Shown here: piece by piece, positions 12,116 through 46,834 of the stretch
Layout: each line of letters begins with the position of its first letter
Position numbering within the stretch: the stretch's first letter is position 1
Origin: Monocercomonoides exilis PA203
Taxonomy: Eukaryota; Protista; Preaxostyla
DNA: 64,000 nt
Reading direction: 5' to 3'
Assembly (NCBI GenBank): GCA_001643675.2
Contig: LSRY02000011.1
Coordinates: 1,302,001 to 1,366,000, forward strand
The notes under the pieces: generated by a model
Seen by the model: the letters and a program-made list of their open reading frames with translations, nothing else
Told to the model about the DNA's origin: nothing
Database searches by the model: none
Made by a program: the position numbers and the translations under genes

Positions 12116-12129
12116 CTGTTTAATTAATA

Positions 12130-12390: not shown

Positions 12391-12471
12391 TATTATTTCT
12401 TTCAAAATTTTTGATTCGAAATTATGTTTTGAATATCAACAAAAGAACACTGAAATGTGATAAGGTTTATG

Positions 12472-13920: not shown

Positions 13921-14013
13921 GGTTTATGAAAGACATCTTTGGTTTAAAGTCAGTTTGAAGCTTTTGTTTTTGAAACAATTCTGATGAATTTACCATTTTT
14001 GTCCAAAATCTCT

Positions 14014-17067: not shown

Positions 17068-20000
17068 GGGGAAAATATGGCACTTCAAGCGTTTTCAGTG
17101 AAAAAATTTGCAACTGAAAAGAAATGATTTCTAAGCTTGAGAAATGAGTTTCGAGAATTTATTTATTTGAAAAATTTAACTTTGCAATAGAAAAATTTTC
17201 ACAACTTTCGTTTCTTGAATATTTTTGAATAATAATTTGAAATCTTTATTCAAAACAAAGATTCTAAATAAACTTCGCATTTTATAATACATGTTTATAT
17301 CAAAAACCATATATCTTAAAAAAGATTGCATTATAAACTGATTTCCAAATTAATATGAGGAAGGTAATGAGTCACAATTGTTATAAAGGGTTATTGAAAA
17401 TTTTGAAATTTCAATTTGAGAACACCTATAAAATTTTTGTGAATTCTCGGAATCAGTTAAGATTCTCGAAGAATAAAGATATGATAGTGAAATAGCAAAT
17501 TAGTTTTTGAAATTGCCTGAGTCTGTTTTTTTGATCAGCAATGAAAATCAGTTTTAGAGGATTATTCATCAACAAAAGGAAATTAAAAATAAAGTTTAAA
17601 GTTTCAATGTGTTTGCTATTTCTTTTTTACGTGAATTAATTTGTCAACCTCCAATTTTTTGAAAAGAGAAAAGAAAATATAAAAATCTTTATAATTTCAT
17701 TTTTGAATGCGAATATATGTTTGCTCATAATAAATATTTTTCAGGTATTAATAACGATAGTTCAAAGCATCTCATTTTGAAATTTTCGTATAGGAAAGTT
17801 ATCAAAAAGGATATTCTTTTGTTTTTTTTGTCAGTATTTCAAAAGAGAACTGGATGCCGAGATGCAATCAGAAGATGGAAGTTGCATGTTTTTAATATTC
17901 AGTAGGAACATGGGATGAAAATAAATTCAATTTCAAAGCATTTGGAAGAGAGGGAAAATTGAAGAAGAATGCCAACAATTGGACAGCTCTTGGAAAGAAA
18001 AATGCAGAAATATTTTTTTGATGAGGAAAATGGATGAAAACATAGAAAGAAGGATATTTAAGGAGAAAAAAGGAAGATGGAGAAAGGAGCACAGGGAAAC
18101 AATGGAAAAGGAGATTGACTGCATTAATGATTGAACAATTCTCTGCTTTTGCAATAGGGAAGGACAGGTCTTCTTTTTTAAGGAATTTTCATAGTCGATG
18201 CAAAACCAATTATTTTCATATTATTATTTCTTTAATCATTTTTATATTCCGACCAACAGCATTTTTTATGTTGAGCGCTATTGCCAGGAACAATTCATTA
18301 AAAGTTGCATTTTTGCGAATTATGTGGTTTCTTCTTCTTCTCCTCCGATTTCTTTTTTGACGATATTTTTTTTTAAATTTGGCAGCTGAAAAGAAGGTCT
18401 TTTTCGTATTTGAGAATTTATCGTTTGAATAGCCATCAAATTCTCATGCAGCAACTTAGAATGAGTTTGCCATTTTTGTGATTCAAACGGCAAACATCTG
18501 TGTTCAACTGTTTTCCACTATTTCCTTTTTTTTCAATTGTATTTGTTGGCTAATGAAAATTTTACCAGAGAGAAGTGCCTTTTATTTTCTATCACACACC
18601 AATGCAACTCTGCCATCCTTGTTTTGCCTTCAGGAAAGAAAGCCAACTTTCTTTTGTTCAACTTTTTCAGTTTTTTTGTAAATTGTTTTTTCAACTTTCA
18701 AAGCATCCAACTGTTCGACCTATAAAAATGATGAGTTTTCTTCTTCCTCCTCTTTTTTGTTCTCTTCTTCTTCATCTTCTTCTCATCCTCCTCTTCATCT
18801 CCATCTTAAGTACCTTCGGCTGCTTCATTAGCATCCACTTTTGATCTTCGATCTGCACATATTGTTCCAAACTCAGGTGGTTTTGGTGGATTATGCGTTG
18901 CGGAGGGGATCGGGAATATAAGTGAAGGAGGGAACTTGGATGAGAAAACGGGAAGGCTGTACATATTAACAAACGACTGCTCAAAAATGCTTGATTCAAC
19001 TGGTTTGCAACTTTTGTTTAATAGAATTTCATCGTCATTCTCTGTATTTTATTGCAAAAAAATATTTCTTTTTTGTATTTTTCAATTAAAATTTATCCAT
19101 TTTCATTCAGTATCATTGTTTTTTTTTTTTTTTTTTATTTCAGCATATTTCATTTCACTGAATGCGCAGATAGCTGCCACGCACAAGCGAGGGACAACAG
19201 AACTGTTAACCAACCAGCATTTGGAAGCAGCAACAGCTGTGCGCATGTTGTTTTCAACAGCAGCGCATCAAAATTTTGTGTGCTGAGATGCCATGATAAA
19301 GCTTACTGTGTCAAAGCAGCCGACATTTCATTCATCGTGGGCGCAGTGAATCCGCTGTCCAGGAAGTCGGAGAAAGACCAATTCAGGGAACGGAAGAGGT
19401 GGCGTGAAAACCCGCATTTCGAGGTATTCAAGAGCAGCTAAAAGAAGGAGATGGAAGCGGAGGGAAACTTGGGGCAAGGACGTTGAAGGAATCGATGCTG
19501 CCAAAGATGATTACAACGAACGAGGACGATCTCTTAGCGGATCCGAGAGAACAGTTGTTGAAGCAGGCGAAGATTGCTAAAAATTTGCTTTACAAATATG
19601 ATTGCATTGAAATTTCAAATGTTTTTCATAAATATTTCATTATTTCACGCTTTGTGCAAAATTCATTTTCATGGTTATCAAAACCTATTCTTCAATTTGT
19701 CAATTGTTTTGTTGTTAAAACAGCTCACAAGCTGATGAACCCCTTGAAAGAGACAGAGAAACGCTTGAGAACAAACTACGGGCCTGAAGATGCAAAAGAA
19801 GAATGAGCTAATTTTTTTTGCATCCTTTGGAATGTGCCATTCACATCGAAAGAAACTTCCACTTCACACAAACTATCTCATTTCAAACATTTTTTTAATG
19901 GAATTATTTGTTATGTGTGTTGTCATTTGTGAATTTTCAATGCTTTCTTTTTAATATGATAAATCCAATTGATGACGAGACTTTTCTCAGGATAATGATA

Positions 20001-23000
20001 GAAGAAAGGACATCTTCTTGTTCAACAAAAAATATCAACATATTTAAACAATCGGATTATTCAAAATTCCATGTGCATGAATTGAAATATGGATAACAAA
20101 AAACATCGTTCATCCAATTTAAATGATAACAATTTAATTGATGCAAAGATTAAAAAAATAAACAATAGAACAAAATCTCTCACATAATGATGGTTAACAT
20201 TAAAAAAACCAAGAAAGTTCTTATGAAAATGGAACAAATTTAAAGCTGACCATAATTAACAATCGGATTGTCTAAAGTGCTTATTCGTGACAAGCCATGA
20301 AGACCAGCCTTTGTCAAGTCTTCTTTCTCTCGCGCGCTTTTCACAAGCCCACCCCCAAGCCCAGCCAACCTCCCCAGCGCCGTCCCTCTTGCCACAGCCC
20401 CGTTCTTTCCATACACCCTCTTCTCGATCCTTTTCTTCTCTTCCCTGCTCAGCTCAGAAACAAACGCACAGTGCAGCATCTGCACTGCCACCGTCTCCAG
20501 CGCTCGCTCTGCTGTCCGCGCCGCAAGTTCCACCGACCGCTCTCATGCAACAAACCCCACAACCCCCGCAATGAGATGCCCGGCCAGCTGGAACAGAACA
20601 CCGCACTTCCCCTCAAAGTCAAACGTGATGTTGTGCTCCTGACAGTTCGAAAAGAACTGCCCGTGCGGCACACGCGACAGCTCCGGCTGGTAGAACGGCT
20701 GCACAATCACAAAGCTGCGTGTCGCTGCTGGAGAGAGACAGGCACACACCCGTGCAGAGGCGCTGGCTGAGCCACACGCCGCCTGAGGGGACACTCTCTC
20801 CACACCTGCCACCTGTCGCGGCGAGGCCGACCTGTGTGCTCCGCTCGAACAACCCTGAGGCCGAGCACAGGCAGAATGCGCAGAATCAGAGGACGGAGCA
20901 CTCACATGCAAAGCGCCTGTGCCGCCGCGGAGCGGAAGGAGGTAGTTTCCAGACGCAATCTCGATACCCCCCTGCAGCAGATACGACATCCACCGGAACA
21001 CCAACAACGCTGCTTGCGGGCCCACAGAAAGATCCACCACTCACATCCGCAGCGACTCCCACTCGTCCACAAACACACAATACGAAACACTAAACACCCC
21101 AATCATCCCTTTCCCGTGGCACACTTGCCCGATCGCATACGTCGCATCCCGCAGAGCGATCGACGGCACACTTTCCTGCGGCACAACCTCCCCTATCGCA
21201 ACAAACTCGTCCATCCTCTCTCTCTCTCTCTGCCTGTCCGAACTCAATTGCAACGACACTCCATCCGATGCCAAACATCCACCCCCACCCCAACTCTCTT
21301 CTCTTCTCTTCTCTTTCCTCAAAAGCAGTCTTTCAACAATTAATGTGACGCTCATCGTCCCGTCTGGCTGTATCATCCCTTCCACAACCGGCTTCCCCAC
21401 AATCCACTCCCGCTCCGCACACAGCTCCACCAGCGCCCCCGTCACCGTCATCGTCACCAGATAGTCCCGCCATCTCCCATACGCACTCTCGTCAACCAGC
21501 ATCACACACTCCGGATGCGCAGGAACACTCAGCAGCGATGCCACATCCAGAATCTGCCCCTCTTCTTCTTCTTCCTTCTCCAAATCAATCGAACTACCCT
21601 CTCTCCCTGACTCCTCATTCATCCCCAAACCATTCGCAGACATTTCCACTTGTTCAACATCTTTCACCGCTCCATCTGAACTTTCATCGAAAGTTATACC
21701 CAAAGACCCATCTGCTGCTTCTTCTTCTGCTCTTGATATCTCCTGTTGGATGCCGTAGGCTGATGAAGTGCTGCACACTTAGGGTTCAACTGAATGCTGC
21801 TTGTCTGAACCTGCCTAAGCCTCTGCCTTCACAAACCTCAGCCAACTCAGCCCAAGCGCCTCCACAACCAGCAGCACCATCGCTTCTTCCAGCTTCCTCT
21901 GTTTCTCTTTGATTCTCTCCACAAAATCTCTGTGAGCAGTCTGATACCCGCCTTTCTCCTCATTCCCATCACCTCTCTCTCTCCCTCCCTTTTCTTCTCC
22001 ATCTTCTTCTCCCTCTTTACCTCTCCTTTCTCCTTCCTCCACCTCTTCCCGTTCCTCCAGCTCTGCCAGCGCAATCGCTGCATGAAACAGAACCACATCC
22101 TCCATCCTCAGTCCCGCTGCCGACAGCCCCTTCTCCACAATCTCCCCCACTTCACGCACTGCAACCCCTTGCTCCTTCACTTTTTCACCCAGTTTCGTCC
22201 CTCAGCACGCATATTATTCGGAGATCCAGGCACCAGATGTGCAATTACGAACGAAATCCTCAGAAGACTAGGTTCATTTTTGTTAAGTTAAATATAATTC
22301 ACTTCCTCAGCCCTATGCTCTGCTTCTTTCATGATTCAATATCCCTCAAAACAGACTTTTTCACATAAGGGGAATTAGAAGAAGAGTGAAAAAGAATCTC
22401 CGAGAACTTCACATTGTTCTGCAACATAACACTTTTGATCAGTAGAGTGCGCTTTATCACAATGTTTCTTCAACATTGCTTCTCGAGCTCATTGTGATGG
22501 CTTCTTTTGACTTGCACAAATTCCACCTGCATCTGGCAAAGAAAACTTCAAAGGAATTTGATAATGTTCATCATTCCTTCCCATGCGAATGAAGCAGTCA
22601 TCGTTTACAATCTTTGCGTATGAAGTGTGAGAGGAAGTGAAGAATATTCATCCTTTGATATCGATGCATCTGACTTACCAGTTTTCTTTGCATCGGAAAT
22701 GGCGAAAAGAGAAGGTTTGTTGTGTATTGCGAAGAAGAAGGGGAGAATAAAGAGAAAGATTATGAAGAAGATGAAGAAATTGAAAATACCAAAAGAAGAG
22801 GCGATTAGTGAGATGTCTTTTCTGCAAGACTATTTTTTGAGATAAACCTTCATATCAGACAGAAGCTCCATCAGAAGTATAAGCACTATATTAACATTCG
22901 GATAAGAAAGGAAGATCAGCCGAAAAAGCTCTCGTTAATTGGCAAAAGGGCAAAAAGATCAGTTGTTTTTCAAGTGAAAAGAAAAAATGTGAAGAGGTGA

Positions 23001-27853: not shown

Positions 27854-29255
27854 TCACTGGAAATGATGGAGATAATGAAGGCAGTCTGAAGTGAGAAGAG
27901 CTCCGTGGAATGTATCATTGAATTGCTCGAGAATTTCTTTTGCAGATTTTTTTGTCAACTTTGCGAAAATTTATCAAATGTTTCAAACAAAATCAAAGAA
28001 TAATCGTTAAAATGCTATCAATATTATTAATTATTTTGAATCATACTTTTTTCCATATGCACGCAATAAACAGTCCAGTTCGTCCAGTTCCAGAATGACA
28101 ATGGACACAAACGCGCTTTCCTTCCTTTATCAGCTGGGAAAAAAAATTGTAATAAATTACATTTTCAAATGCAAACAGCACAAAAACAGATGAAAGAAAT
28201 TCGCAAATAAAAATGTTTTTTTCAAAAAAAAAAAGGCACACGTCAATGATTTCATTAACCAAACGGCCATATTCTTCGAACTCTGGCGGAACGCTCATAT
28301 CATCCACCTCATAAACATGAATTGGAATTTTTAGACTTTCATAATAAGGCAGGAGTTGCCTATTTGTATGATATTCCAATTCCTAATCAATACGAATACA
28401 AAAATGATTATTAAATAAAAAATGTTAATTTATGATAAAAAAATTATATCAATGAGAACATTCAAACTTCCTTGTGTGCAAGAATAACAATAACATCAAA
28501 ATGAAGCGCTTCAAATTCTTCACGTATTGTACCTGCTGGATCAAACATTCGTGATATGGGCATGGGGCAGCGCCATATCGGTTTTTCAATAACGGGCAAA
28601 ATAATTTCTTGTACTTTTCTTCCAACCTTAAAAATATATTCATTAATAACAGGAAAAAAAGAAAATGAAGCAAAATCAAAAGGGAAATGACAACGAATTT
28701 TATAAAGTATTTCTTCACAAACTCCCCAATCATCAGTGTTTGGTATCTGACCTTTTTTCAATTCTCTATCTATTCGAGGTTCCCAGAGTATTGTTTTTGA
28801 TGGGTCAAAATCATCCAGTACAACATATGTGTATCTAAGATTTGTATCTGGAATCTGCAATTTGATTGTCCAAAAAGCTTTTGCAGTGTAAATCATTCGT
28901 CTGAAAAAACAGTATAAATAAAAGAAAAAGCAATATGGAAGCAAAAATAAAGTTTGCAATGAACATCCAAAAATTGTTAATTTTATAAAAGTATAGAATG
29001 AGCTTTTTGCTTTTAGAAAATGAGAATGAAATGTGTCAAACAATGATGGATTCGGCCGCCAACATCCAAGTTCCTTTCCTTCTCCTAAAAAATGATGTCG
29101 TAAATAAAATACAGTTTCATTGAAATGTAACAACGAGATGATAAATAAAAATCTTTGGGTAATCGGTAATCACTCAAACCAATAACATAGCAATTCTGCC
29201 CCCATTTCGATTCAAAACGCAATGAAAACACATATTCCCGAAGGGGTGTTTCCAT
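27854..29255 (-). CDS. CBM20 starch/glycogen-binding domain + dual-specificity phosphatase (laforin-like architecture), multi-exon
   Basis: Spliced reading METPLREYVFSLRFESKWGQNCYVIG/EGKELGCWRP...FWTIKLQIPDTNLRYTYVV...LWEPRIDREL...DDWG (CBM20-like); then HVYEVDDMSVP and VCVHCHSGTGRTG (CX5R); last exon LTKKSAKEIL...HHFQ*. Confidence 0.75.
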
Positions 29256-29815: not shown

Positions 29816-32208
29816 TCACTTCTTTGCCGACTTCCCTTCTTCCTCAGTCGCACCAGCCCCCGGCAGATCCAGTGTGAACGATTCACTTCTTCTGGTTCCT
29901 GCGCCTGCTGTCTTTGTACCCGCAGCTTTCGTCGAAGGAGAAGAAAGGCGGGCGGACGCTGTGCTGGGCGGGCTGGCGGAGGGTGTTTTGAACTGCTGGT
30001 CGCTTGAGAGGCGGCGGAGATATGTTGATACTCTCTTTCTCCCAAAGGCAAGCGACTCAGCTGACTCGTCCTCGTCGCTTTTCTTTGCATCTGAAGAAGA
30101 AGAAGAAGAGGAGGAAGAGGACGATGAAGGTGTTGCGGAAGAAGAGGAGGAGGAAGAAGGAGAAGAACCATCTTTGCCTTTCGAAGACGTGCCATATGTC
30201 AGCTCCTTCGCTGCCTTCTCAGCTGCCGAGTCGCTCTTCGTAGAAGGTCTTGCCAAGTTCGGCTTATCGACTTCCATCGCCCTCTGGAACGAGGAAAGCG
30301 CCTCTCTGATGGCTGTCTTCCCTCCAAGCAGCAGCCCCTTTTGCAGTGTGCCGTCTGAAAAGCCCTTCAAAAGCACAACTGCCTCATTTTCTTGCCTGAG
30401 TGTCTGGAACATGCCACACAGACGAGCAACTGCGTGGATTTTGGTGGTGATCTCCCCACGGCGCGCTGCCAGTGATGTGTCTTTGTCTTCGCCTTCGCCG
30501 GGTGCTGATGTTGAGAAGAAGAAGAATGATTGTGAAAAAAGCAGCAAAATTTAATAGGGAAAGATATGATGAACAGATATAAGCAAAGAAGAAATAATTG
30601 ATATAAATGAATTGTGATAATTAAAGAAAGAAAGAGAGATAGCCTAAATATGCAGACTTGAGCAGAACTTGAGTATTTCCAGGAGCATGGATGCGATGTT
30701 CTCCGCTACGTAAGGGAGAGAGAGATGGAAGACGTCGATGAAGTTGGGCAAGAAATACGGGTGGGGCGAGGCAGAGAACTGTCTGAAGTGGATTTTCTCT
30801 TTCTTCACAAGCAGAATGGCAGCCTGGTTTTTGAAGGAGTCCACATAATTGGGGCAAGAAAACAGGGTGATGACAGTCGGGAAGGGGTTTGTGCCGGAAC
30901 GAGGGAATTGCATTTCGAATCCTGTGTCTTTGCATTCGTGGCCACGCACAAGAGCCACAAGAGAGTTGGCTCGGAGAAACTGGCGGACGGCGGTTGCTCT
31001 GAGAACAGGGAGAAAAAAAAAATAGATAAATGAGAGGTGGAACGGATGAAGAGGACAAGGATATATTCAACAGATAAATGATTAAGCAAGTTAATTTTTA
31101 AATAGAAACATTTCAAAATACAAACCCGTAATAATACGAGCAATTTCTTGCAGAATTATCAATGAAAGTGACTGTGTTTGAAGGATCAAGCTCTGCTGGA
31201 ACTGGATCAGACCACAGCATGTCTGTCACCATTCCTGTGTCCGGAATCTCTCTGAACCTGTTGATGCCATTAAGAGCATCAATCTGAAGAAACAAAAGTT
31301 AAACGTGAATTGAATAAAGTTTTACAAAGAATTATAAAAGAATTCATAAAAAACGCAATCCAACCTTTTTCAACTGAGGTGATATTCCTGCATGCACGCA
31401 AAAGAATCTCTTTTCTCCAATTAAAGCAGCAAATGGCATTGTATCGAAAACAGACAAGAAAGCATAGTACACATCACTGTTATATTTGTAAATACCTACA
31501 AAAATATAAAAAATAAAAGATTACAATAAAAATAAATAAGTATAGCAAACATTCACGCTTGAAGTTGAAATGTTCGGTGAGGTGTTTGCTTTCATGGTTC
31601 CCACGAATCATGAAAAAGCTTGTTGGATAGTTAATTTTCAAAGCAAGCATGTGAATAAGAAGTTCACATCCAAAAAATCCACGATCCACATAATCTCCGA
31701 GGAACAAATATGAAAACTCGGAAGGATCTCCACCAACTTCAAGCAACTTTAGAAAGTCATAATAAGATCCTTTAATTATAAAGAATAAATATTTTTTTTT
31801 TATCACAAGAAAAAAAAAAATATGAACATGGCAAATTATATTGCAATTCAAATGTGCAATCGATAAAGTAAATCAAAGTTCAAGAACAATGAATATAACG
31901 ACACTTTTTAAAATACAAAACAAACCATGAAGATCTCCAGCAACTCGAACTTCTCCGCTAATATCAAGCACATTAGGTTCTGTTCTGAAAATTTGTGCAG
32001 CCATGTTGACTATAGTTGTAATGTCCGAAATGTTAATTCTACCCTCTCTTACAAAGTGTTCCTTTAAAGCAGGGATATTGATTTTATTTGGAGCCATGAA
32101 CAGGACGGAATGGTCCAAAATATCTTTTGCTGGTTCAGGAACATCTGAGCAAGGACGGCTAATTGTGTCAAAAGATTCACCAATGTCGACTGCTGGAGCA
32201 GAAGTCAT
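29816..32208 (-). CDS. Calcineurin A (PP2B catalytic subunit), multi-exon
   Basis: [39 protein letters not shown]; CnB-binding [21 protein letters not shown]; CaM-binding [16 protein letters not shown]; autoinhibitory-like [12 protein letters not shown]. Confidence 0.93.
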
Positions 32209-32951: not shown

Positions 32952-35900
32952 TTACGCCTTGTGCTGTCCATGAATTAATTTCCTATGGAACAAATCGTGA
33001 TGTGGTTGAATAACTTTTCCATCGTGATCTAATACTGAGATCGCAACTGCAGCAATAAGAAGAAACAAAAGGACCACGAAAAGAATCCATTTAATCGTGC
33101 GCTTAACTCTCTTTTTCCGAGGAACCCAGCGTGGGCGTGTGGTTGCAGGAGTGTAAGTTGTTTCTCCGGTTTCAGCCAATTCGGCTTTTCGCTTCAAAAT
33201 TAGATCGTATTCTTCCTTCAAAACATCCGCCGCCCACTTCAGCTGCTCTCTTGTATGTGATGCTGAAATAAAGAAGCGAATTCTAGCCTTTCCTTCCTCG
33301 ACAGCTGGAGCGTAATATGGTGAGGCTTCTATTCCACGGTAGTGGATGGCTTGCGCGAGTCTAAGAGTTTCTTCTGAAGTATGCACGATTGCAGGAACAA
33401 CCGCAACACCAATAGCATCACCCACATCAAACCCACGTTCAACCAGCAAATCTCTGAAGTACAAAGAATTATCCTGCAACTTTCGCACTCTCCACGGCTC
33501 CTTCTTCATCACCTCAAGCGCTCCCAAAGCAGCTCCTGCCTGTGCAGGTGGCATTCCAGCAGAGTAAATGAATCCGGGTGAAGTTCCTCGCAAAAACGTG
33601 ATTAACTCCTGCTTCCCTGCGATATAACCACCACACGAAGCAAACGATTTTGAGAGTGTGCCCATCCACAAATCAACATCTGAAGGGTCGATGCCGAAAT
33701 GCTCTCCAATTCCTCTTCCAGTTTTGCCCATCGTTCCAATTGAATGTGCTTCATCAATGAAAAGAAGGCAATGGTGCTTTTTCTTCAGCTCAATCAGTTC
33801 TGGAAGACGGCAAGCATCTCCATCCATAGAATACACACCTTCAGCCACAATCAGGCACTTCCTGTGTTTTGTTCTGTTTTCAGTTAAAATTGCGTCCAAG
33901 GCTTCTGTGTTGTTGTGCGGGAAGGAAATTGTTGTTGAGTGAGAGTTCTTGTTACCTTGGATGATTGACGAGTGGCACAGCACATCATACACAATAAGAT
34001 CACTTTCCTTCATCAAATGGCCGATTGTGGATTCATTCGCCATGAAGCCACCAACATACAAAATCGCGTCCTCAGCGCCAACCCACCAGGCCAGTCCTCT
34101 TTCCAGCTGGTAGTGAATGATACGTGTCCCTCCCACAACACGCGATCCAGAGACAGACGTTCCATAGCGAGCAATCGCATTTTGTGCAAATCGCTGGACA
34201 CGCTTGTCTCCAGAAAGGGAAAGATAGTTGTACGAAGTAAAGTTGATGAAGTCTTTGCCTTCCATTTGTGTTTCGTCATCATTCACACCGTCGTTGATAC
34301 GCAGATATGGCATATCATTATCCACAATCGATTTCATGAAGTCCAATCGTCTTGTTTCTTTGACGACTTCAGGCAATTTCTCAATCACATACAAATCTTC
34401 AGTCATCACGTATTCTTTTTCCTTTTTCCCTTTCTTTCCTTTTCCGTGTCCGCTGCTTCCGCTGGGATGTCCTGTGATCTTTTCAGACAGATCTTCAGCA
34501 GCTGAGCGAATAGAATCATACTTAGCAAGTGCCTGTGCAGAGACTTCAAACCCAACGATGGATGAAAGTGATGATGCAATGCTGATGGATGCATTGGAAT
34601 CAAGCCCAACATCACCAAGTGACAGATCATCAGTAAGATTCTCTGGCAAGTCTGACACATTCTGACGGAGCAGATCAATGATGATATCTGACATGCGATC
34701 TGCATTCATCATTGAATCATCGTCATCATCATCGCTGTCTGAATCAGATGAGTCGCCGCTGCTTCTCCTATGAGAGCGATGGCTGTGAGACTTCCTTTTC
34801 ATCTGACTGCTTCTGCTTCGTTTGCTCACCTTAACTTTGGCTGAGGCGATTTCTTCATCTCCGCTCTCTTCGTCATCAAACAGCACTTGCATGACATCAA
34901 TCTCACTTTCGCTGAGTTTGCTGGCTCCTCTAACATTAAGGACAGGATGAGTGAATGTAATTTCTTTGTCCTTTGAAGACTTAGCAGATTCTTTATTTGC
35001 TTTTCCTTTTTTGATTGCAATTTGTGTGGCGTTGTCTTCCACGTCTGCTTGTTTCAATGAAGTTTCAATGCGAAGAATGTGCTTTCCACCAGATGAGAAG
35101 CTTGGCAGAGTCACCTGCTTGGCTGGTGCAACAAGATGTGCGACCATCGAAGGCGCAGAAAGGAACGGCAAAATTGGAGACGCTACTGCTTTGGCTGAGA
35201 CACCAGGTGTTTGAAGTGCCAGATCTGTGCGGAGCATTCCTTGTGTTGTCTTTCCCACACGCGACCAGTCAACATGGCACACGACAAGCTGTGAATGGAT
35301 CATTCTTGGCGCGACTGTACCGTCAGAGCGGGGCAGTAAAGAGAGAGGAATCGCAATATCTTCATTCTGATCATCGCTTGAGATGTCATAGTCGCCTCTC
35401 TTCAGTGTCAATGCTTCGCTCACAAACCGTTCCATGACTTTCAGAGCATCGCTGATTTCAAGTGGAAGGACACCTTCTTTTGCCAGCTGTGGAAGAAGAT
35501 CATTGTTTGCTCTCTTTGAAGAGAACATACCTGCATTTGTTGGACCAAGATTAAGTGAGAGGTAAAGTGGAGAGGAAGGCACAGAAGATTCAGAAGTGTA
35601 AGGTTGATGAGAAGATGCTGCAATCGAATCGAAGAATGCATTTGCTGCAGAATAAGTTGCCTGTCCAACTGAACCAAACAGTGAGGCAATTGAAGAAAAC
35701 ATCAGCACAAATTCGCACTTCGCTCTGTCTTTTTGCTTCATTCCATCGATTGCTGCTTTGATGTTGATAAGTCCGAGCACTTTTGGTTGCATAACAGCGT
35801 CAATATCTTCCTTTGTGGCTTCAACAAACAGTGAATCTCTGAGTAATCCTGCTGTGTGGATAACACCTCTCATACAGCCAAATCTTTCATCGTTCAGCAA

Positions 35901-38900
35901 GTTTTTGATCATCTTGCGAACGGGATATTCCTGTGTCAGATCGCACTTGATCACTTCGATGATTGCCTTCTCGTGAGGATGAGCGGTGTTATAGTTGACT
36001 CCCACCTCTTCCAGTCGGTGTGCTGCTTCTGGTCTGTCTGTACGTGAAAAGATGTCGCTGCATACGATTCTTTTTGCTCCGTTTGCGAGTAACCACTCAA
36101 CAACACACAGTGCAACGCCACCAAGTCCACCAGTGACGAGATAGAAGCCATCAGAGTGGAAGAGTTGTGAATGAATAGAAGTTGAAGAAGATGCAGAAGA
36201 TGAAGGAGATGATATTGTGATTGGAGGATGAAGCGGTGAAGGTGTCTGAAGAGGCGATGAAGCAGGCACGCGATACATTCTTGGAGAAAAGCGTGTGCCA
36301 TCTGCAGCAATTGCCACTTCAACCTCAGTTCTGGTCTTCTCCTGCACTGCCATTGTGGCGATGGATGTTGGGTGGATCAGCAAGAACTCGCGTAGAACCG
36401 TTTCATCTGACGATTGTGCGATTTGGTCTTTTTCAATCTTCAGCTGACTGACAGAATCGCGCGAGGGAAGATCCAACAGCCCAACTCTGAAAGTGGCTGA
36501 CATTTCCCGAGCGACCACTCGCCCCAATCCCCAGAGCATTCCCTGAACTGTTGTGGCAATATCTTTCAAATTCACTTTCACAAGTGACTTATTCTGTTCA
36601 CTTGACTCATCTTCACTTCCTTCTTCCTCTTCCTCTTCTTCTTCTTCCTCACTTGAATCATCGACTTCTGATTCGTGTTCATCCCAGCTTGACTGCTGGT
36701 GAGTTCCTTTCTTCACAACTGATGTGTTGCTGATCTCATTCGAATGAAGTCCTCTCGTAACCAACATGAACGGAGCAGGTTTCTTCCTTATTCCTGCTTC
36801 GAGCGACGTGATCGTCTTGAGGATTCTCTGTGGAGTGTTTGTGGTGAATGAGGAAACAACCTCAAACAGTGATGAATAATCTAATGACTCACGCTGCTCT
36901 TTTGTGAAGATCGTCGCCTGGTCTCTTTCAGAAATAAGAAGAGATGGATTGTGAGGCAGATCAAGACACCACATGTATATCACACCAAGCAATGGAAGTG
37001 TTTTTGGAGCTGAAGAAGAAGATGATGATGAAGACGAAGCTGAAGCTGACTTTGGTGCAGCGCTGCTCTGGTCGTGCATAGCTGCAATGATTGCTTCACG
37101 CACAGACTCATCGCGCATTGGATTGGCGTAAATGACTCTGATCGAAGAAGACTGATTGCCAACTTTGAATGTATATTGCGTTTCTTTCCCATCTGCAATT
37201 GCATCTGCTACGTTCTGAATTGCAGATGAATCTTGTTTTCTCTGCTTTGACTTCGATTTCATTGGAGGAGCAGCCGATGCCTGGCTAAGCGGATCGACGT
37301 GGTTTGAACGAATGACAATCACTTTCCCGTTCTTCTTCATCATCTGCAGCTGCTTTGCAACATTTATGCCGTCTTCGCTTTCAGCTTCCGCAAACACCAG
37401 CCACACACCTTTTTCATCATCTGCTTCGTGATGCAATGGTGCCAGTGCTTCACTCAACGGTGCATCTTTCTTCTTGTTCTCTGCCTGTTTCCCAAGCTGA
37501 GCCTCGCCCCACTCAAGTGAATACAACGCCTGTCCAATTGTGCTGTTCCAGCCGTCTGTCACATTCTGCTTCATTTGCTGTTCAGTTGCGCGGCGCACTG
37601 TGAAGTTGTGGAGCACGCAAATCAATTCCATTTGAGAATCTGCTTGAGGAGCCGATGGCTTCACTGGTGAAGCAAACACCTCTTTCCTTTTGACTGTAAC
37701 AGAATCATCAGAAGGAGAAGAAGAAGATGATGATGAAACGGCCACGATTGAAAGGTCAGCCGATATCTCTTCCGGTGGTTGAGTTCCTTCGATGTTTGTG
37801 AGCTGTGGCGAATGAACATGGACATACAGCTCTTTCTCTTCCACACCTTCGAGGAAGGCTGATCTGAACAGCTGGACTGACTCTATCTTTGTTGGAAGAT
37901 AGAGACATGGGTTCAATTCTTCTTCCTCCTCGTCTTCTTCTTCTTCTTCAACTTTCTTCTTTCCTTTTCCTTTCTGGTCTTTCTTTGCCTGCTTTGGTGA
38001 TTTCTTGTCGTCGTGGAAGACAAGACTGAGTGCAGCAACAGCGTGGAAAGACGCATCCAACAGAGCAGGGTGGATGAAGAAGGACTCTGCATTTGGAGTC
38101 TGCTTCGCACGGGTCGTGTCCAGCACAGCCAAAACCTCGTCTCTGCAGAACGAGATGGAGGACACGCCTTGGAAGTGGTATCCGTAGTTGAGTCCAGCAC
38201 GTGAGAACAGAGTGTAAAGTGCGAAGGCTGGCAGACTGGATGCCTTGCAGCGCTTACGTACATCGCTGAGGGAGACTGATGGATCGACACCAAGCAGAGG
38301 AAGGGTCGACAGGATGGAGGAGAGAGAGGCTAATGAAGAACTGGAGGCAGACGAAGAGGCAGAAGCAGACAGTTGAGGAATTGCTAATCCCTCACCAGCC
38401 ACACTACCTGGATGCATTGCAGGGCTCATTGCTGCATCGAGAGCATCAGCGCCTTCTGGAATGATCACAGCGCTGGCGTGAGTTGTCCAGAGATGTGATG
38501 GAAGATTGGCTGCTGCTGATTTATGGAGCATCGCAGCATTCTGTGCATCTCCTCTGCTGCGAGGATGTCTCAAACGAGCTGCGATCTTCACAGTTCCCAT
38601 TCCCATTGGAAGATCAGAAGAGGATGAAGAAACAGAAGAAGACGATTCTTCGTATGAGGCCTTCAGGCGGATTTGGCGTTGGAGGCCAAGAGTCAGCATG
38701 CGGTTGAAAGTGACAGATGTCAGATGAAGAGGAGATGCTGAGTTTAAAATAACAAAATATTACATTAAAATAAAAATATAAAAAAATTCAAATGAAGAAA
38801 ATGAAACTTAAAAATTTAAAATAATTTAACAACAGAATACCTTTTCCTCTTTTCGATGTGAATTGTGATGGGTGAGTGATTTGTGCGTTTCTAGCAGCAA

Positions 38901-41900
38901 CAGCAAGCATCATTTCAACATAAGCAGCGCCAGGAAGAACAGATCCTCCCAACAATCCATGCTCCAACAAGAACGAAGTGGGTTGAGAAGTGTAAAGTGC
39001 AGGTATCGGAGAAATAGCAGGGGACGGAGAATTAGGAGATGATGGCTTAATATCGTGCATGTCAAATAGTCCCTTCCACGTGGCTGAGAAATTGGATGAA
39101 TCAACAGCCGCCTTTGGTAGTAATGGGTGTGTTGTGTCTTCCCAGTGCTTTTCTTTCCTCAGCGAAGGCGATCCAGCGCTTCCCTCAGCCGGGTCAAAGC
39201 CAGCAAACGGTCTCAACCGCGCGCCTCTCCTTCTGTGCCTCCTCTGTGAATCCTCATTGTCGCTGTCCTCCTCAGACTCATCGTCGCTCTCTTCGTCAAC
39301 GTTGTACCAGCAGAACTGGCCGTTCCACTGATAACTTGGAGTCAATGTGCAGTATGAAGCGTGCTGGGACATGAGAACGTTTGGGGAGTCCCAGTTGATG
39401 CTGAAGCCAGCACAGAACAGTCGCCCAATTGCGCGTCGGATGAATGAAAGCTCGTCTTGCTTCACTTTCATTGTGGATACAACAAACAGAGGCGAAGATG
39501 CAGCTGACAGGAACGCTGCGGAAACAGGCTGTCTCTTCTGCATCTGGTTTTTGCCTTTCCTTTTGTCTTGTGCAGCAGACATTTTTGCCTCGTTCTTCTT
39601 CTTCTCCCACTCCTGGAAGTTCTGCTGGATGGCTGAATTGAGCACTGGTTGTGATGCTACCTCGACGAATGCCTTGTGCCCGTCGTCGATCATCGTCTTC
39701 AGCGCCTCGCCAAATCTGACACACGAGCGGATCTGTGCTGCCCAGTAGTCAACAGTCAGCTGCTTTGACGGGTCTTCTATCTTTTTGCAGAGTGTGGACG
39801 AGTAAAACGGAATGGCGTATGAAGAGAAGAAGTGAGCTGGAGAATAGCCGTTGGCATTTCCAGCGGATGGGGTGGATGAATGCGACAATGGAGTGATTTG
39901 AGGGAAGTGCTCCACAAACGAGGGAAGAATTGACTGCATCGCTGCGCTGTGGAAAGCATACTCCACACGGACATTCTGCACAGTCAGCGGCTCTTCATCA
40001 TCGTCATCATTGCTGTTATTGGCATTTGCTGCTTTGCTCTTTTTCTCTCCTTCCTCTTCTTCTTTTCCGTTCGATCCATCTTTTTGCTCTTTCTTCTGTT
40101 GTGCTTTCTCCTTTCTGAGTGCATTTTGGATGTATTCAATGCACCTTCCCACGCTGTTTTCGTCTCCAGACAGAACCATCGTGTGCTCGCTGTTGATTGT
40201 TGCAACAGACACAGAATCAGGATTTGGATCAACAGAAGCAGACACTGACAGTGATTCAGTGTTACTTTCAGAATGCTTCTTTGATTTAGCGCCTTCCTTT
40301 TTGGAGGATTTTGAGTGATGTTGTGTGCTTTGTTCTTCGGCTGATGAATCTTCTGCTTCCATTCCTTTCTCTTTCCTGTTCCATTCCTTCACAAGATGCT
40401 CAACTTTCTTTCCGTTCAGCTCCACACCGCCAGATGACAGCTGCCTCATAACACCTTTTGGCGCCTGCTGCATCGCCAGCCCGCGATGGCACACAAGCTT
40501 CACTGCGTCTTCCAGAGAGAGAGCACCGCTGATGTGAGCTGCAGCTATTTCTCCGATGGAGTGGCCCACAACAGCGGATGGAATGATACCCCATTCACGA
40601 AGCAGGCGGCACAATGATACTTGGATGGTAAACAGAGCTGGCTGGGCAATGCATGTGTCAGCTAATGTCAGAGGATGAGATGGCAGAGGAAGTGTGGTGG
40701 ATGAAACAAGAGGAGATGATGCTTCGGTTGATTGGCTGCGCTTCTGCTTCTTTGAAGGAGTCGAAGGAGAAGCTGATTCTTTCTTCTTTGGTGTGTCTGG
40801 TGAGTTCATCTTTGGCGATGATTTTTTGGGTGTTGCTGGAGAATCGTCGCGTCTTGACTTCTTCTTTTTCGAGGTTGTTTGTTCGTGTGAAGACTCAGAT
40901 GAATCTGGTGTCTGGCTAACGTGTCTCTCACGTTTTCCTTTGCTTTGTGTTTGTTCTTCTTCTTCTTCTTCTTTCTCTTCTTCTTTCGGCTTGGCAGCAG
41001 AAACTTGCTCGGCAGACTGATTTTCCACAGTAGATGGGTCCTTCGCAAAGAAGTCGAGAATGGAGATGCCGCCCAGATGCTTCTTGATCAGTCTGTCAAT
41101 CTCCAAGCAGCTCTGTCTGAACACTGGCTCCTCTTTGAACAGGTGGAATGCCATGTCCGGACGCTGGGCGCCTTGCCCCGAAAAGATGAATGCAGGTCCC
41201 GTTGATGCGTTTGGCACAAAGCTCATCACGGCTTCAGAATTGTTTGAAGCTGATCCCTTTTTCTTTCCAGCTGAAAGAGACAGCTCTTTCATCTCGTCCA
41301 GAACAGCCTGAGGAAGTGGCTGGACTCCGCTGAGTGTCTGTGAAAATGTCTTCGATTTGGCAATCTCCTGCAACTCTTTGATAGCTTCAGTGTGAGTTGA
41401 GAACACAGCTGTTGCTCTGTATGGAGCCAATGCCTCGCGCTTCTGTGCAGCTGAGTAGCACAAATCGCGCAGGAACTTCAGAATGGAGCTGAGAGCTGCT
41501 GGCGGAATTTCGGGGTCTGTGCGAGATGATGATGATGAGGATGTCTCAAGTGAAGGAGTAATTGAAGGTGATGGGGATGGGGATGGAGATGGTGTGGGTG
41601 AAGGAAGAAGAGGAGGAGAAGGAGACGGTGCAGGAAACGGAGATGCTTCATCAGATGAGCCATTCTTCTTCATCGCAATTGTTGCCTGTCTGATTGCCTG
41701 TGATGCAAATCGGTTGATTGTGTCAGCGTATGAATGAGCCAACGCACACAGCGAAGCAGACGAGCGTGCAGAAAGTGGAAGAATAAATCTTGAAGGGATT
41801 TCCTCCAGTTCTGATTCAGCCAACTCTGCTGCCGGCTCGTTCTGCACCTCGCGCTTCCGCAGAGACGGCGGGCAGTCAGCCACAATTGCATGAGCATTCG

Positions 41901-44900
41901 TCCCACCGAAGCCAAACGCACTTAAAGCGCACACTCTCCGGAGGCAATTCTCGTTGTTGGCATCGCCACGTGGCTTGGCGCTCCACACCTGGTTCGTGTC
42001 CTGCACTTTCACATGCAGCCGCTCAAAGTCGATGTGTGGGTTTGGCTGTTGGAAGTGCAGCGACCGCACAAACATCCCGTTGTGGAGGCAGAGCGACACT
42101 TTGACAAGACTTGCAACACCAGCTGCTCCTTCGAGATGGCCAATGTTCGTTTTCACAGATCCCACACGCAATGGATTTGGCTCGCTGGAGGCGCTCTTCG
42201 TCGCTCGCAGCTTCTTTGCGTAGACAGTTGCCAGTGCTTCCACTTCAATTGGATCACCCAATTTGGTTCCAGTTCCGTGGCATTCGACGTAATCGATGTC
42301 TGAGCCGCTGCGAACAATCCTCGCTCCGTTCTCGTCTCTGACGTGTGATGCGTCTTTGAGGCACTGACGAAGCAGCATCTCTTGTGAAAGTGGAGACGGA
42401 GCTGTCAGACCATTGGATTTCCCGTCCTGGTTGACTGCTGTGGCGAGGAGAACTGAATAAATGCGGTCTCCATCAGCGACAGCGCGTGAAAGAGGCTTCA
42501 GGAATACCACTCCGCACCCTTCTGATCGCACATACCCGTTTGCTCTTGAGTCGAATGTTTTGCAGCGCCCGTCAGGTGACATGAAGTTGGCGTGCGACAT
42601 CGACACAGTCACAGCAGGATTGAGGATAAGACTGACACCACCAGCAACAGCAGCAGAGCATTCGCCCCGGCGGATGGCGTCCATAGCCAGATGCACTGCG
42701 ACAAGAGAAGAGGAGCAGGCAGTATCCACAACCATTGAGGGTCCTACAAATCCGAATGAGTAGCTCACTCTGTTTGCAAGAATGGAGAGCGCTGAGCCAG
42801 TTCCTGTGTAGCTGTCACACATCTCCACTTCCTTCATCTGCAGCGAGCTGTAATCAGAGCCCGTGCATCCGAAATACACACCCACATTCTTTCCTTTCAG
42901 CGACGATGGAACGACTCCGCTGTCTTCGAGTGCCTCCCACACGCACTGCAGTGCCAGACGCTGCTGTGGGTCCATACGGCTCGCCTCAGCAGCAGAGATT
43001 GAGAAGAAGTTGTAGTCAAAAGTGCACACCGATCTCCCGTCGATGAAACCTCCCCATTTTGTGCTCATTTTGCCTGAGCCAGATGCGGTGGGGGTTTCTC
43101 CGGTGCCGTCGTAGTACTCTTCCACAGACCAGCGATCAGCTGGCACTTCTGTGATGGAGTCGACGCCTCTCATCAGATTCTGCCAGAACTGCTTCGGAGA
43201 CGAGGCTCCGGGGAAGCGCAGGGCCATACCGCACACTGCAATTGGCTCAGAATACGCGCTCTGAGAAGCTGACGAGGCAGAAGTGTCTTCCTCATCGGCA
43301 TCAGCTTCTGCAGCTTCGGCTTCCTGTTGCGCTTCGTCTTCGTTTCTCTCCGAAATTGCCTTTTTGACCTCGTCGATCAAGAACGGGGCAAGCTCAGTGA
43401 TTGAAGGATATGAATACGCGACAGTCGGTGAAACCGTAATTTTGAGTACTTTTTCCAGTTCTCCAGCGAGCGGAACGGCTTCCACAGACTTCACTCCGAT
43501 GACTGAGAAGTTTGTGTTATCTTCAATGATCGAAGGATCTCCAATCTCCAACTCATTTGCAAGAACAATTCGAATGAATTGGCAAAGAGATTCTTTCTTT
43601 GGAACCTTCAGCTGAGCAGAATCAGAAGCAGAAGACGATGAAGATGCAGAAGATGTTTGGATCTCGTCCTCATCCCATTCAATCGCTGGAAGCGGAAGAG
43701 TAACAAACTCATATTGGTCGTTTGATCCTTTTCCCTTCTGACCAGCCAGTCCATGTGCTCCTTTCAACCGCCCTGCTCCGTATTCTGCTGAGCCTGTGCC
43801 CACCCATTCGTGGACAACAGCACCATCCTCTTTGAACTTCCCCATTTTCAGCCCAAGTTCTTTCACTTGGCTTCGCTGGATCTTTCCAGAAGATGTTTTG
43901 TATATTGAGCCTTGCTTCAGCAGCACTACGCGATTCACAGCAACATCAACCTCCTTCGCCACTGAGGCCACAATCAGCTCCACCAGCTTAGGATACTCAG
44001 TTGCTGGGCATGTGTCGCGTACTTCCTGCACAACGGTGATGTTCTCTTCTTCTGTTTCCTCAGCTTTGATCTCTTCGGCTCCCCCAGCTTTCTTTCCTTT
44101 CTTTTTTCCCTTTCCACTCTCTGCTTTTTTCCCTGCTTTGTCTGCCTCTTCGTTGTCGAGGATCTTTTTCATAGAAACGGTAAGGGAAACAGCAGCAGAG
44201 CAGCCTGGTCGCAGGTGAGGAGATGCATCTTCGCTTGCTCTTTCAATGTCCATCGGATAGACATTGTGGCCGTGAATGATAATCATATCCTTCAGCCTCC
44301 CAGACACGAACAGGTGCCTGTCGTACACAAACCCCAGATCGCCTGTTCTGAGGAACGGGCCTCTGCCATCAGCAGTGTAGCAGCAGAACGCCCGCTCTGT
44401 CATTTCTGGCTCTCTGAAGTATCCCTTTGCCACAGAGCTTGATTGGATCCAGATTTCGCCCACTCGATCGGGTGGTCGCTCTGCGTTCGTTGCGGGGTCC
44501 ACAATCAGAACAGTCCATCCGATTGGGTCAGGTATCCGATTCTGTGCTGCAGTAACAGGTCCGCAAATGTATCCAGTTCCAACCAGCTCTATTGAGTCGT
44601 CTTCCTCGTCTTCCTCGTCCTCGTCATCGTCATCATCGTCTTCGCTCTCATCATCTTCTTTCTTTTTCTTTTTGTCTGCTACTGCTTTGCCTCCGTTGGC
44701 CAATGCAACAACTCTATGATCAGAAAGAGCACTTTTGCTGAATGTGTAGACTGGCATACCATGTGATGATGTTACCATCAATGTTGTCTCTGCCATCCCA
44801 AAGCAAGGTGTAAAGTGTCCTCCAAATCCAAACTTTGCAAATCTCTCGTTGAAGCGTCGCAAAGTCCTTGCCCTAACTGGCTCGCTACCGTTGAAAGCAT

Positions 44901-45810
44901 TGTGCCAGTTTGAGAGATCAATTTTCTTCGACACAAGCTCCTCGTCTTTCACTTTTCTCAATACCAAATCGTATCCAAAGTTTGGCCCACCACCAGAATA
45001 GGCTTTCGTGACAGAAAGCAGTTCTATCCATCGAATGGGCGATTTTAAAAAGTCTAGAGGTGACATAAATGTGATATAGCCTCCTAGATAGACTAACTGA
45101 AGAATTTGTCCTATCAGTCCCATATCGTGATATTGTGGAAGCCACCCAGCTGCAGAAATTTCAGGATATTCATCATAAAATTTATGCTTAAATTCACGAT
45201 AAATGTGTCGTTCATTTTCCATAAGATTATCATGAGTTACCATGACACCTTTTGGATCGCTTGTTGAGCCTGATGTGTATTGCAAAAATGCAATTGTATC
45301 TTTTGTGATGTGAGGTTTTTTGTAACTTTCTGCCTTTGAATCAGGAATAGAATCAACAGTAATCCATGTAGCAGTTTTGAAAGATGGGAACAAATGAAAC
45401 ACGCCAGAAGACAATTCTTTCATGTCACTTGTTGTAACAATGATAGTAGCACCTGATTTCGTCATAATTGCTTCCAAACGTTTTAATGATTGATGCATCC
45501 TTGATGGATCAGGAGGATAAACAGGAACTCCAATAACTCCAGCAAACATACAAGAAAGATATGCAACAAGAAAATCAGCACTTGGTGGAAACAAAAGGAT
45601 TGCTGAATAACCATATGCACCGCACTCATTCAGAACGGATCCTACAGCACGACATCTGGTTAGGAGCTGTGAAAATGTGTATTGTGAGATCTTTCCATTG
45701 AGATCGCCTGTATGAAGGAATCTGATGGCAGGGTGATTTGGCCTTGCTAAAGCACGTTGTTCTATGACTTCAACAAAAGTTTCTTCTTCACCGATTTTGT
45801 GCAAAGCCAT
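32952..45810 (-). CDS. Giant type I PKS-like protein FAAL-ACP-KS-AT-DH-KR-ACP-AONS/SPT(PLP)-TM, about 4251 aa; exons 45810-38841 and 38737-32952
   Basis: FAAL: FLQYTSGSTSDPKG, WLPQYHDMGLIG, FLRTGDLGF, KTSSGKIQR. ACP1 GVKS. KS: DTACSSS, HGTGT, KTNIGH. AT: GQGAQ, GHSIG, YAFHS. DH: HGLLGGSVLP, HPALLD. KR: TGGLGG, HTAGLLRD, YSAAN. ACP2 GLDS. AONS/SPT: SYNYL, EGVYSMDGD, DEAHS, GTLSK. TM WILFVVLLFLLIAAVAISVL. Phase-1 GT..CAG intron 38840-38738 joins the two ORFs in frame. Confidence 0.93.
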
Positions 45811-46834
45811 AGAAATAAGATCGAAGATCAGAACCAATATTACGAAGGTTTTTTTAAATACTAATTGATTGAGAAAAACATTTATAATATGAACGGTTGT
45901 GGTATTTTTCGTCAAACTACGATTATTGTGACAACAATGAGTTACTCCTTTTCCGTGCATAATTTCTGATTATTAAAAGGAAATTATTCATATCCAATGG
46001 ATGAAAAATAATATTCGGAAATTGTTCGAATATAATTTATATGTTGATATTGAAATTTGGAAAATAAAGAAGTTCATTTCAAATAATAATTGTATTTGAA
46101 AGAAGAGACACAAATTCTCATGTTTTTATTTGCAGGTTGAATAAACAAAAAATAGTAATTGCATTCAAAATAATGATCATGTGTTTATTGTTTTATCTTT
46201 TTCATAGGGATCTGTGACTTTTGAAGATATAACACATTTTTTTTTCTGTTGCATCGAAACGGTGTCTCAAACACAAGCGTTAAATTGTGTCAATGATATT
46301 TTTGTTTGTTTCAAATCTCTTCTGCAGATTTTGAATATTTTCTTTGACGGTACATATTTTTTATTTTATGTATATGAACAAAGTCTGGTTTAAGTACTGA
46401 TTCTCTCAAATAAATATTTTTTCAAAATTTGGCGAAATGCACAATCAAATCAAAAAATATTGCAATAATAAAAATTACTTTGACAAATAAATCTGGAGTT
46501 ATAGGGAAATTAATACATTTGAATTCTTGGTAATTAAAAGTTTCTGTTCCATCGAATTCACCTTACACTTGACCACAAAACAAGCCGTGAAGTGTTGCAT
46601 CCTTGAAGCAGATAACAATTAATCACAAAGTTTCCTACTCATAAATATTGTCATGCGTAAACAGTTCAATTTCCGTTGTTAAATGTTAAAGCTTATCGTT
46701 CAATATCGCTGTTAACGAATATCCAAATTCATTCAATAAAATATTGAAATAGAAAATTCTATCAAACGGTTCAATTTTTAGTGAACTTTTATTGATAGAT
46801 TCGTTTTGAAGCGAATTTCATAATGATGATAGCG

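Follow-up and report, generated by a model that had tools for sequence, protein, structure and literature searches.

A window of 64,000 nucleotides from the protist Monocercomonoides exilis PA203 (assembly GCA_001643675.2, contig LSRY02000011.1, positions 1,302,001 to 1,366,000) contains on its minus strand one spliced gene for a megasynthase in which a fatty acyl-AMP ligase (FAAL), a polyketide synthase (PKS) module and an alpha-oxoamine synthase (AONS) are joined in a single chain. The order of the domains is FAAL, acyl carrier protein (ACP1), ketosynthase (KS), acyltransferase (AT), dehydratase (DH), ketoreductase (KR), a second carrier (ACP2) and AONS, followed by one C-terminal membrane helix, and the catalytic motifs are all intact. 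It is the only gene resembling serine palmitoyltransferase (SPT) that we have found in this genome. Judging from its sequence, we consider it slightly more probable than not that this tail-anchored enzyme, of bacterial ancestry, stands in for the LCB1/LCB2 SPT and yields the long-chain bases of the cell. All coordinates are given as positions within the window (the whole 64,000-nucleotide stretch), unless a contig is named.

In the DNA the gene appears as two long open reading frames (ORFs) of the minus strand, 38788-45960 (2390 amino acids) and 32952-38699 (1915 amino acids). A preliminary description of this stretch, made from its letters alone, had proposed that both belong to one gene with an intron inside the DH domain, and the RNA data have now confirmed it. 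The coding sequence comprises 45810-38841 and 38737-32952 (6970 + 5783 nt), i.e., 4251 codons. Read on the minus strand, the last bases of exon 1 are ...AAA AGA GGA AAA G (...KRGK and the first base of the next codon), the intron opens with GTATTC, its 3' part reads AAACTCAG, ending in CTCAG, and exon 2 opens with CA TCT CCT CTT. The split codon G+CA gives Ala and the frame then enters SPLHLTSVTFNRML. The GC content of the intron is 13.6% vs. 47–49% in the exons, and its retention would bring a stop after 17 codons. Both length (103 nt) and composition fit the published figures for M. exilis, with a mean intron of 119 bp and an intron G+C of 27.6% (PMC8767320). The evidence from RNA comes from four Illumina RNA-seq runs of one study, whose contigs were aligned over 36240-41340. 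In each of the four runs a 4259-nt contig covers 36655-38737 and 38841-40938 and skips exactly these 103 nt, the junction ends being CT..AC on the plus strand, that is, GT..AG on the strand of the gene. In each of the runs the depth of the bin 38805-38975 equalled that of the contig multiplied by 135/171, which means that 38805-38840 was uncovered and that no intron-retaining contig had been assembled. Further RNA joints near 37031, 37917 and 38617 were discarded as artefacts, their sides being stretches of about 20 nt inside GAA/TCT low-complexity runs. We have taken as start codon the Met at 45810, which fits the alignments with bacterial FAALs, since these open at residues 4–11. From the lengths and positions of their records, the adjoining RNA contigs would span from ca. 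45812-45817 down to ca. 32406, consistent with this start and with a 3' untranslated region of about 0.5 kb.

Pfam and homology searches were run on the two exons separately. Exon 1 matched AMP-binding, PP-binding, the N and C families of the KS, acyltransferase and the start of the PKS dehydratase, and exon 2 the remaining dehydratase, KR and Aminotran_1_2. This parse and the verified coordinates of the motifs (Table 1) agree with the domain order, intact motifs and C-terminal membrane segment of the preliminary description. Over the first 700 residues the NCBIfam FAAL models (262–354 bits, among them PRK05850 with 354 and FadD32 with 328) scored well above the acyl-CoA ligase models (122 bits at most), and ACP1 comes next on the chain. 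All these FAAL scores lie beneath the curated cut-offs because of inserts. At residues ca. 345–412 the domain has an extra segment, which aligns with one in a bacterial FAAL-like protein and is swollen by an acidic low-complexity run; this run may sit where FAALs carry their specific insertion, which blocks the CoA-binding conformation. The FAAL domain is 38–39% identical to those of bacterial FAAL-PKS proteins. ACP1 carries GVKSV instead of GxDS; alone it gave no BLAST match against the retrieved relative proteins, and when the whole FAAL-ACP-KS stretch is aligned its Ser coincides with that in the GL(S/N/G)S motif of the bacterial FAAL-PKS carriers. The KS has the Cys-His-His triad of type I PKSs, and the AT, interrupted by three low-complexity inserts, is provided in cis with its GHSxG and substrate motifs; the substrate is probably malonyl. 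The DH and KR motifs of the reductive loop are all present, HGLLGGSVLP standing 30 residues ahead of the intron. From established PKS knowledge we take the L-x-D in HTAGLLRDS to mark a B-type KR. In the whole protein Pfam detected no enoyl reductase (ER; ADH_zinc_N/ER) and no methyltransferase. The carrier Ser is in place, and the genome contains an Sfp/AASDHPPT-like phosphopantetheinyl transferase (PPTase) ORF (G000:C51). In the AONS the His, Asp-x-x-His and Lys that bind pyridoxal phosphate (PLP) all align with SPT. The membrane helix, IKWILFVVLLFLLIAAVAISVL, 25 residues before the stop, is the sole strongly hydrophobic segment of the protein, and the alignments with bacterial homologues stop ahead of it. 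Low-complexity inserts make up about a quarter of the protein and account for its large size.

Table 1. Features of the megasynthase gene (positions within the window).
Feature	Position	Strand	Content and motifs
Coding exon 1	38841..45810	-	2323 codons + base 1 of the split Ala codon; FAAL, ACP1, KS, AT, N-terminal part of DH
FAAL	43861..45810	-	Pfam AMP-binding + AMP-dom_DIP2-like
ACP1 (loading carrier)	43387..43575	-	Pfam PP-binding; Ser in GVKSV at 43474-43500
KS	42052..43248	-	Pfam E 2e-89; DTACSS 42709-42726 (Cys), HGTGT (His), KTNIGH (His)
AT	39631..41190	-	Pfam Acyl_transf_1 E 4e-46; GQGAQ, GHSIG, YAFH
DH, split by the intron	37536..39033	-	Pfam PKS_DH_N + PS-DH; HGLLGGSVLP 38932-38961, NYGYHFQG, DASFH 38043-38057
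Spliceosomal intron	38738..38840	-	103 nt, GT..AG, phase 1, inside the DH domain
Coding exon 2	32952..38737	-	Bases 2 and 3 of the split Ala codon, then 1927 codons and the stop; remainder of DH, KR, ACP2, AONS, membrane helix
KR, catalytic subdomain	35598..36149	-	Pfam KR E 3e-38; TGGLGGVA, HTAGLLRDS, YSAAN
ACP2	34476..34703	-	GLDSN at 34593-34607; directly upstream of AONS
AONS, SPT-like PLP domain	33222..34253	-	Pfam Aminotran_1_2 E 2e-46; HSSIIQG, DEAHS, GTLSKS (PLP Lys) 33645-33662
C-terminal transmembrane helix, tail-anchor-like	33030..33095	-	Kyte-Doolittle 3.33

The best match of the AONS domain in the PDB is the SPT of Sphingobacterium multivorum (3a2b, 8guh; E 9e-75, 255 bits, 362 aligned residues covering 25–386), a stand-alone enzyme of 398 amino acids with the same PLP-binding His, Asp, His and Lys. 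It is followed by a BioF/KBL enzyme of Thermus, by plant, human and yeast LCB2 (195–211 bits) and by KBL, with E. coli BioF well below (161 bits) and the fungal SphA at 98 bits. We have searched the genome (82,301,135 bases in 101 contigs) in six frames, exon by exon. The AONS protein, the bioF model TIGR00858 and the SPT model NF047600 each matched this locus and no other in the whole genome; the other PF00155 loci were Asp and Ala aminotransferases, C-S-lyase-like genes and class I aminotransferases. Neither LCB1 nor LCB2 was found by this search, nor was ORMDL, in a search made without a positive control, so that instead of the LCB1/LCB2 heterodimer with ORM/ORMDL of the canonical SPT there is a single AONS locus. 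The genome does contain two TLC proteins, one at C16:740006-740581 and its paralogue, with the motif HH...HDxxD..ME..K, which we take to mark ceramide synthases of the Lag1 type. Among solved structures they match yeast LAC1 best, weakly, and one of them is named by the source “putative sphingoid base N-palmitoyltransferase [M. exilis].” A TLC gene of this genome shows 100% identity to a protein recorded under M. exilis. By these features both are candidate ceramide synthases. No gene of the FA_desaturase family scored above the cut-off in the genome, as is expected for an anaerobe.

If the domains work in the order in which they are found, the FAAL would adenylate a free fatty acid and load it on ACP1 without CoA, and the KS would condense this acyl chain with the malonyl-ACP2 supplied by the AT, giving a 3-ketoacyl-ACP2. 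The B-type KR and the DH would convert it, via the (3R)-hydroxyacyl, into (E)-2-enoyl-ACP2. The PLP-dependent AONS would then condense the 2-enoyl thioester decarboxylatively with an amino acid, of which L-serine is the likeliest, and a 2-amino-3-keto-4-ene long-chain base would be let go at the membrane. With serine the product would be a 2-amino-1-hydroxy-3-keto-4-ene base, which for a C14 starter is 3-ketosphingosine and which, once its 3-keto group is reduced, would pass to the two ceramide-synthase-like TLC proteins. One correction to the preliminary description is that DH plus B-type KR with no ER predicts a 2-enoyl thioester instead of a saturated acyl donor, and hence a 3-keto-4-ene base. 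The combination of KR and DH before an AONS, with no ER, recurs in bacterial proteins, which suggests that this chemistry is real. We infer the substrates, the single round of extension, the product and its use in sphingolipids from the domain content. The most economical reading is that the enzyme gives the ceramide-synthase-like TLC proteins their long-chain base. The earlier proposal of a C2-extended amino ketone replacing or supplementing LCB1/LCB2 comes out of the analysis strengthened by the SPT-like AONS, its sole locus, the ceramide-synthase-like and PPTase genes and a genome in which BioB (biotin synthase) was not found, and it remains a prediction from sequence. More tentatively, and with considerable doubt, we propose that the canonical SPT complex of the endoplasmic reticulum was lost and replaced by this laterally acquired FAAL-PKS-AONS, which would introduce the trans-4 double bond of sphingosine during assembly, independently of O2.

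Several points weigh against a role in sphingolipid synthesis. We know of no demonstration that an AONS accepts 2-enoyl thioesters, and a literature search on the sphingolipids of M. exilis found nothing. The sequence does not reveal the amino-acid substrate, and every NCBIfam equivalog scores under its cut-off. A six-frame search made exon by exon can miss intron-rich genes, and the absence of LCB1/LCB2 is therefore not proven. Among the downstream sphingolipid genes, an SMS/IPC-synthase-like PAP2_C, glucosylceramide synthase, the sphingosine/ceramide kinase fold and the sphingosine 1-phosphate lyase fold were not found in the genome, nor was ceramidase in a search without positive control, and the sphingolipid toolkit looks unusually small. 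As to the genes that the preliminary description had named as a check of its proposal, the result for LCB1/LCB2, which were not found, and the presence of PPTase and ceramide-synthase-like TLC genes are in its favor. The PKS could also be iterative, or be helped by an ER in trans, and the sphingoid bases could be salvaged from bacterial food.

The serious rival is that the same chemistry makes a specialised amino-lipid and not a precursor of membrane sphingolipids (for example an analogue of sphinganine, a 1-deoxy base formed with Ala or Gly, an amino ketone for signalling or a metabolite used in defense), the bases used by the TLC proteins being salvaged from ingested bacteria or from the host gut. 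We regard it as unlikely, but to be taken into account. Most of the bacterial FAAL/PKS-AONS proteins are found in contexts that resemble secondary metabolism, the genome has a polyketide repertoire (five other type I PKS loci), and the head-group transferases, kinases and lyase mentioned above were not found in it. In fungi the pairs of PKS and AONS of the fumonisin and sphingofungin pathways yield inhibitors of SPT or ceramide synthase and not membrane lipids (PMC12134224). On the other hand, this is the sole AONS-family gene of a genome that retains two ceramide-synthase-like genes, and the membrane anchor, specific to the eukaryotic protein, puts the release of the product at the membrane, as in SPT. 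Neither is there a biosynthetic cluster around the megasynthase, which we have ruled out, the neighbors being a calcineurin-like phosphatase, a dual-specificity phosphatase exon, a CHY/RING protein, TFIIS and a nucleoside transporter.

An iterative PKS that starts from a short or medium chain, perhaps with an enoyl reductase acting in trans, would give a saturated or polyunsaturated product instead of the C2-extended 4-ene, and we find this improbable. It is true that iterative action is known for the single-module type I PKSs of protists and for the SgaA system (PMC12134224), and that the chain-length preference of a FAAL is not readable from phylogeny (PMC12820801). However, a FAAL-ACP didomain dedicated to loading is usual where a preformed fatty acid starts the chain, the bacterial FAAL-ACP-AONS proteins that lack a KS show that this clade of AONS normally takes FAAL-loaded acyl chains, and, as said, Pfam detected no ER.

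The chance that the protein is an 8-amino-7-oxononanoate synthase of the biotin pathway, joined to a PKS that would furnish its pimeloyl precursor, is very slight. Nominally the bioF model is the best NCBIfam match, but its 342 bits fall short of the cut-off of 426 and are nearly equaled by SPT-CFB (325, cut-off 640; Kbl 296, cut-off 460), the solved BioF structures score far beneath the SPTs, BioB was not found in the genome, and pimeloyl is not what FAAL loading plus one KR/DH cycle would yield. Equally negligible is bacterial contamination or a dead relic of lateral transfer. Although the best matches of all the domains are bacterial, the spliceosomal intron is removed in RNA, the low-complexity inserts are typical of the host, the 12.75-kb frame is open with all its catalytic motifs, the flanking intergenic DNA is AT-rich and the neighbors on a contig of 1.9-Mb scale are ordinary eukaryotic genes (HYLS1 besides the calcineurin-like phosphatase, CHY/RING, TFIIS and nucleoside transporter genes). 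The intron, the expression and this eukaryotic setting together exclude contamination, to the extent that sequence data can do so.

The relatives of the megasynthase are found among bacteria. The AONS domain was searched against 1.84 billion representative proteins and gave 4317 matches below 1e-30, of which the best 150 were examined. These were 44–52% identical and mostly C-terminal domains of multidomain proteins of up to 2632 amino acids. The domain is ca. 51% identical to bacterial proteins and nearer to the bacterial AONSs linked to PKS or FAAL (ca. 390–420 bits) than to LCB2 (ca. 210 bits). The named relatives come from metagenome-assembled genomes (MAGs) of Myxococcota, Clostridia and Planctomycetota, with three layouts among the top matches: FAAL-ACP-AONS, FAAL-ACP-KS-AT-ACP-AONS (ca. 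2200 amino acids) and KS-AT-ACP-KR-DH-AONS. Among the matches listed there was no eukaryotic homologue, and none of them had FAAL, KS, AT, DH, KR and AONS on one chain. The KS is 50–54% identical to those of bacterial FAAL-PKS proteins vs. 38–43% to the PKS paralogs of the same genome, which indicates that the gene is not a recent paralogue of a host PKS. In a FastTree phylogeny of 297 AONS domains the M. exilis sequence sits on a long branch among bacterial ones, joined to another long branch, and the donor lineage cannot be named from such a pairing. On these comparisons we conclude that the ancestry is bacterial, and that the intron, the low-complexity inserts and the membrane anchor were acquired after the transfer. 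The gene is possibly a mosaic. Four FAAL matches (P0164, P0165, P0166 and P0126) were discarded as closest relatives, their higher scores being due solely to the presence of two adenylation domains or stretches; P0164 lies in a bacterial operon.

The five further type I PKS loci of the genome (C28:714808-720831, C28:1019581-1025538, C2:1835520, C23:891536 and C31:868495) are 32–43% identical to the megasynthase and none of them has an AONS. Two are bimodular, with open frames of 5325 and 5237 amino acids that begin with FAAL-like domains, and three are KS-first genes of ca. 3500–3700 amino acids.

The nearest bacterial equivalents share the order that goes from the loader to the terminal AONS. 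They are FAAL-ACP-KS-AT-ACP-AONS proteins of ca. 2150–2270 amino acids (P0085, P0099 and P0137, and the P0017 cluster, the latter from a Clostridia MAG), 46–50% identical to the M. exilis protein in the AONS and 39–46% in the KS. They have neither DH nor KR, so that a 3-ketoacyl is handed to the AONS, have no anchor and are about half the size. This we take to be the RedL/PigH-type layout of the prodiginine pathways, from which the M. exilis protein departs in having DH and KR between AT and ACP2. The FAAL-ACP-AONS tridomain proteins (ca. 1120 amino acids), very numerous in Planctomycetota, are the best matches to ACP2-AONS (42–50% identity) and carry no PKS module. A Myxococcota operon (L035, GCA_039024635.1, JBCCQA010000013.1; also P0009) codes for the same eight domains, with KR and DH and no ER before the AONS, but in three genes (FAAL, ACP and KS-AT-ACP-KR-DH-AONS) and with another order of PKS domains. 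We have rejected it as a donor, with only 27% identity in the FAAL and 32% in the KS, and by these values it would be an analogue. In L035 the genes that come after the operon (7925-20364) are of the fasciclin, SpoIIM-like and LpxR (lipid A deacylase) kinds, which hints at an envelope amino-lipid pathway.

As to systems characterized experimentally, Pseudomonas fluorescens MYb115 makes sphinganine with PfSgaA, an iterative type I PKS, and PfSgaB, an alpha-oxoamine synthase that has SPT activity (PMC12134224). The similarity to our reading of the M. exilis enzyme is that sphingolipid synthesis begins with a PKS-bound acyl joined to L-serine by an SPT-like AONS. The differences are that SgaA/SgaB are two bacterial proteins with no FAAL loader, and that the chain is made iteratively de novo and the product is saturated. 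The canonical SPT (LCB1/LCB2, or SPTLC1/2, with small subunits and ORM/ORMDL) has the same PLP fold and reaction class and is also membrane bound, and the AONS aligns over its full length with LCB2. However, it pairs an active with a Lys-less subunit in a heterodimer that uses acyl-CoA and has N-terminal transmembrane segments, while the AONS of M. exilis, a single domain, is of the bacterial homodimeric type, with an ACP in cis and a C-terminal anchor. Among eukaryotes there is a precedent in the SxtA of dinoflagellates (saxitoxin), with an ACP and an aminotransferase domain on one polypeptide (PMC3097229), in which an ACP-bound acyl is condensed by a domain of the AONS class. SxtA is a methyltransferase-GNAT-ACP-AONS protein with no FAAL, KS, AT, DH or KR, and its product is a toxin precursor built from acetate and arginine. 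In the fungal PKS and AONS pairs Fum1/Fum8 and SphB/SphA (mentioned in PMC12134224), which are eukaryotic precedents as well, the AONS enzyme is a separate protein, and SphA is, by the score given above, distant from the M. exilis AONS.

The preliminary description knew of no characterized eukaryotic protein with this full architecture. We have found none either, although its layout, FAAL-ACP-(KS-AT-..)-AONS, has bacterial precedents. A literature search for sphingolipids, SPT or polyketides of M. exilis or Preaxostyla retrieved only a passing mention of “Preaxostyla (FAAL-PKS)” in a 2026 survey, which describes neither the AONS end nor a function (PMC12820801). No paper was found by pairing “fatty acyl-AMP ligase” with “oxoamine synthase.” What is new is the full FAAL-ACP-KS-AT-DH-KR-ACP-AONS-membrane helix chain, the finding that a eukaryote has and expresses it, and the fact that this megasynthase is the only SPT-like gene found in its genome. 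The logic of the reaction is already known from the RedL/PigH-type synthases and from Pseudomonas SgaA/SgaB, and there are many bacterial near-equivalents. The condensation by LCB1/LCB2 on acyl-CoA is, to our knowledge, regarded as the universal first step of sphingolipid synthesis in eukaryotes. If the proposed replacement is true, this would be a clear example of lateral gene transfer replacing a core pathway of lipid metabolism, and the PKS-derived route to sphingolipids, demonstrated in Pseudomonas only in 2025, would reach the eukaryotes. The DH and KR with no ER would also answer how an anaerobe obtains 4-unsaturated bases with no O2-dependent desaturase, i.e., there would be O2-independent unsaturated sphingoid bases in an anaerobic, mitochondrion-less gut protist. 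The hypothesis is directly testable. Should the product be a specialised amino-lipid instead, a eukaryotic FAAL-PKS-AONS fusion that is expressed and carries a membrane anchor would still be a rarity, of use in enzyme engineering and in following gene transfer into the Preaxostyla.

The first gene downstream of the megasynthase, at 30621-32208 on the minus strand, is the multi-exon gene of the calcineurin-like (PP2B-type) Ser/Thr phosphatase, whose exon 31480-31851 has calcineurin A as nearest structures (E 1e-30), and further on is the dual-specificity phosphatase exon (28041-28379, minus strand). An ORF of 242 amino acids in an AT-rich stretch (14512-15240, plus strand) matches ISXO2-like (IS1595-family) DDE transposases (Pfam E 5e-21) and may be an element derived from a bacterial-type transposase. 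At 132-7409 (plus strand) there is an open frame of 2425 amino acids with strongly negative GC skew and no Pfam match, which may code for a large lineage-specific or low-complexity protein. The end of the window (62000-64000) is a GC-rich block (59.7% GC, GC skew +0.35, AT skew +0.36) with overlapping long minus-strand ORFs in several frames, and resembles a repeat or coding region of biased composition more than it does several genes.

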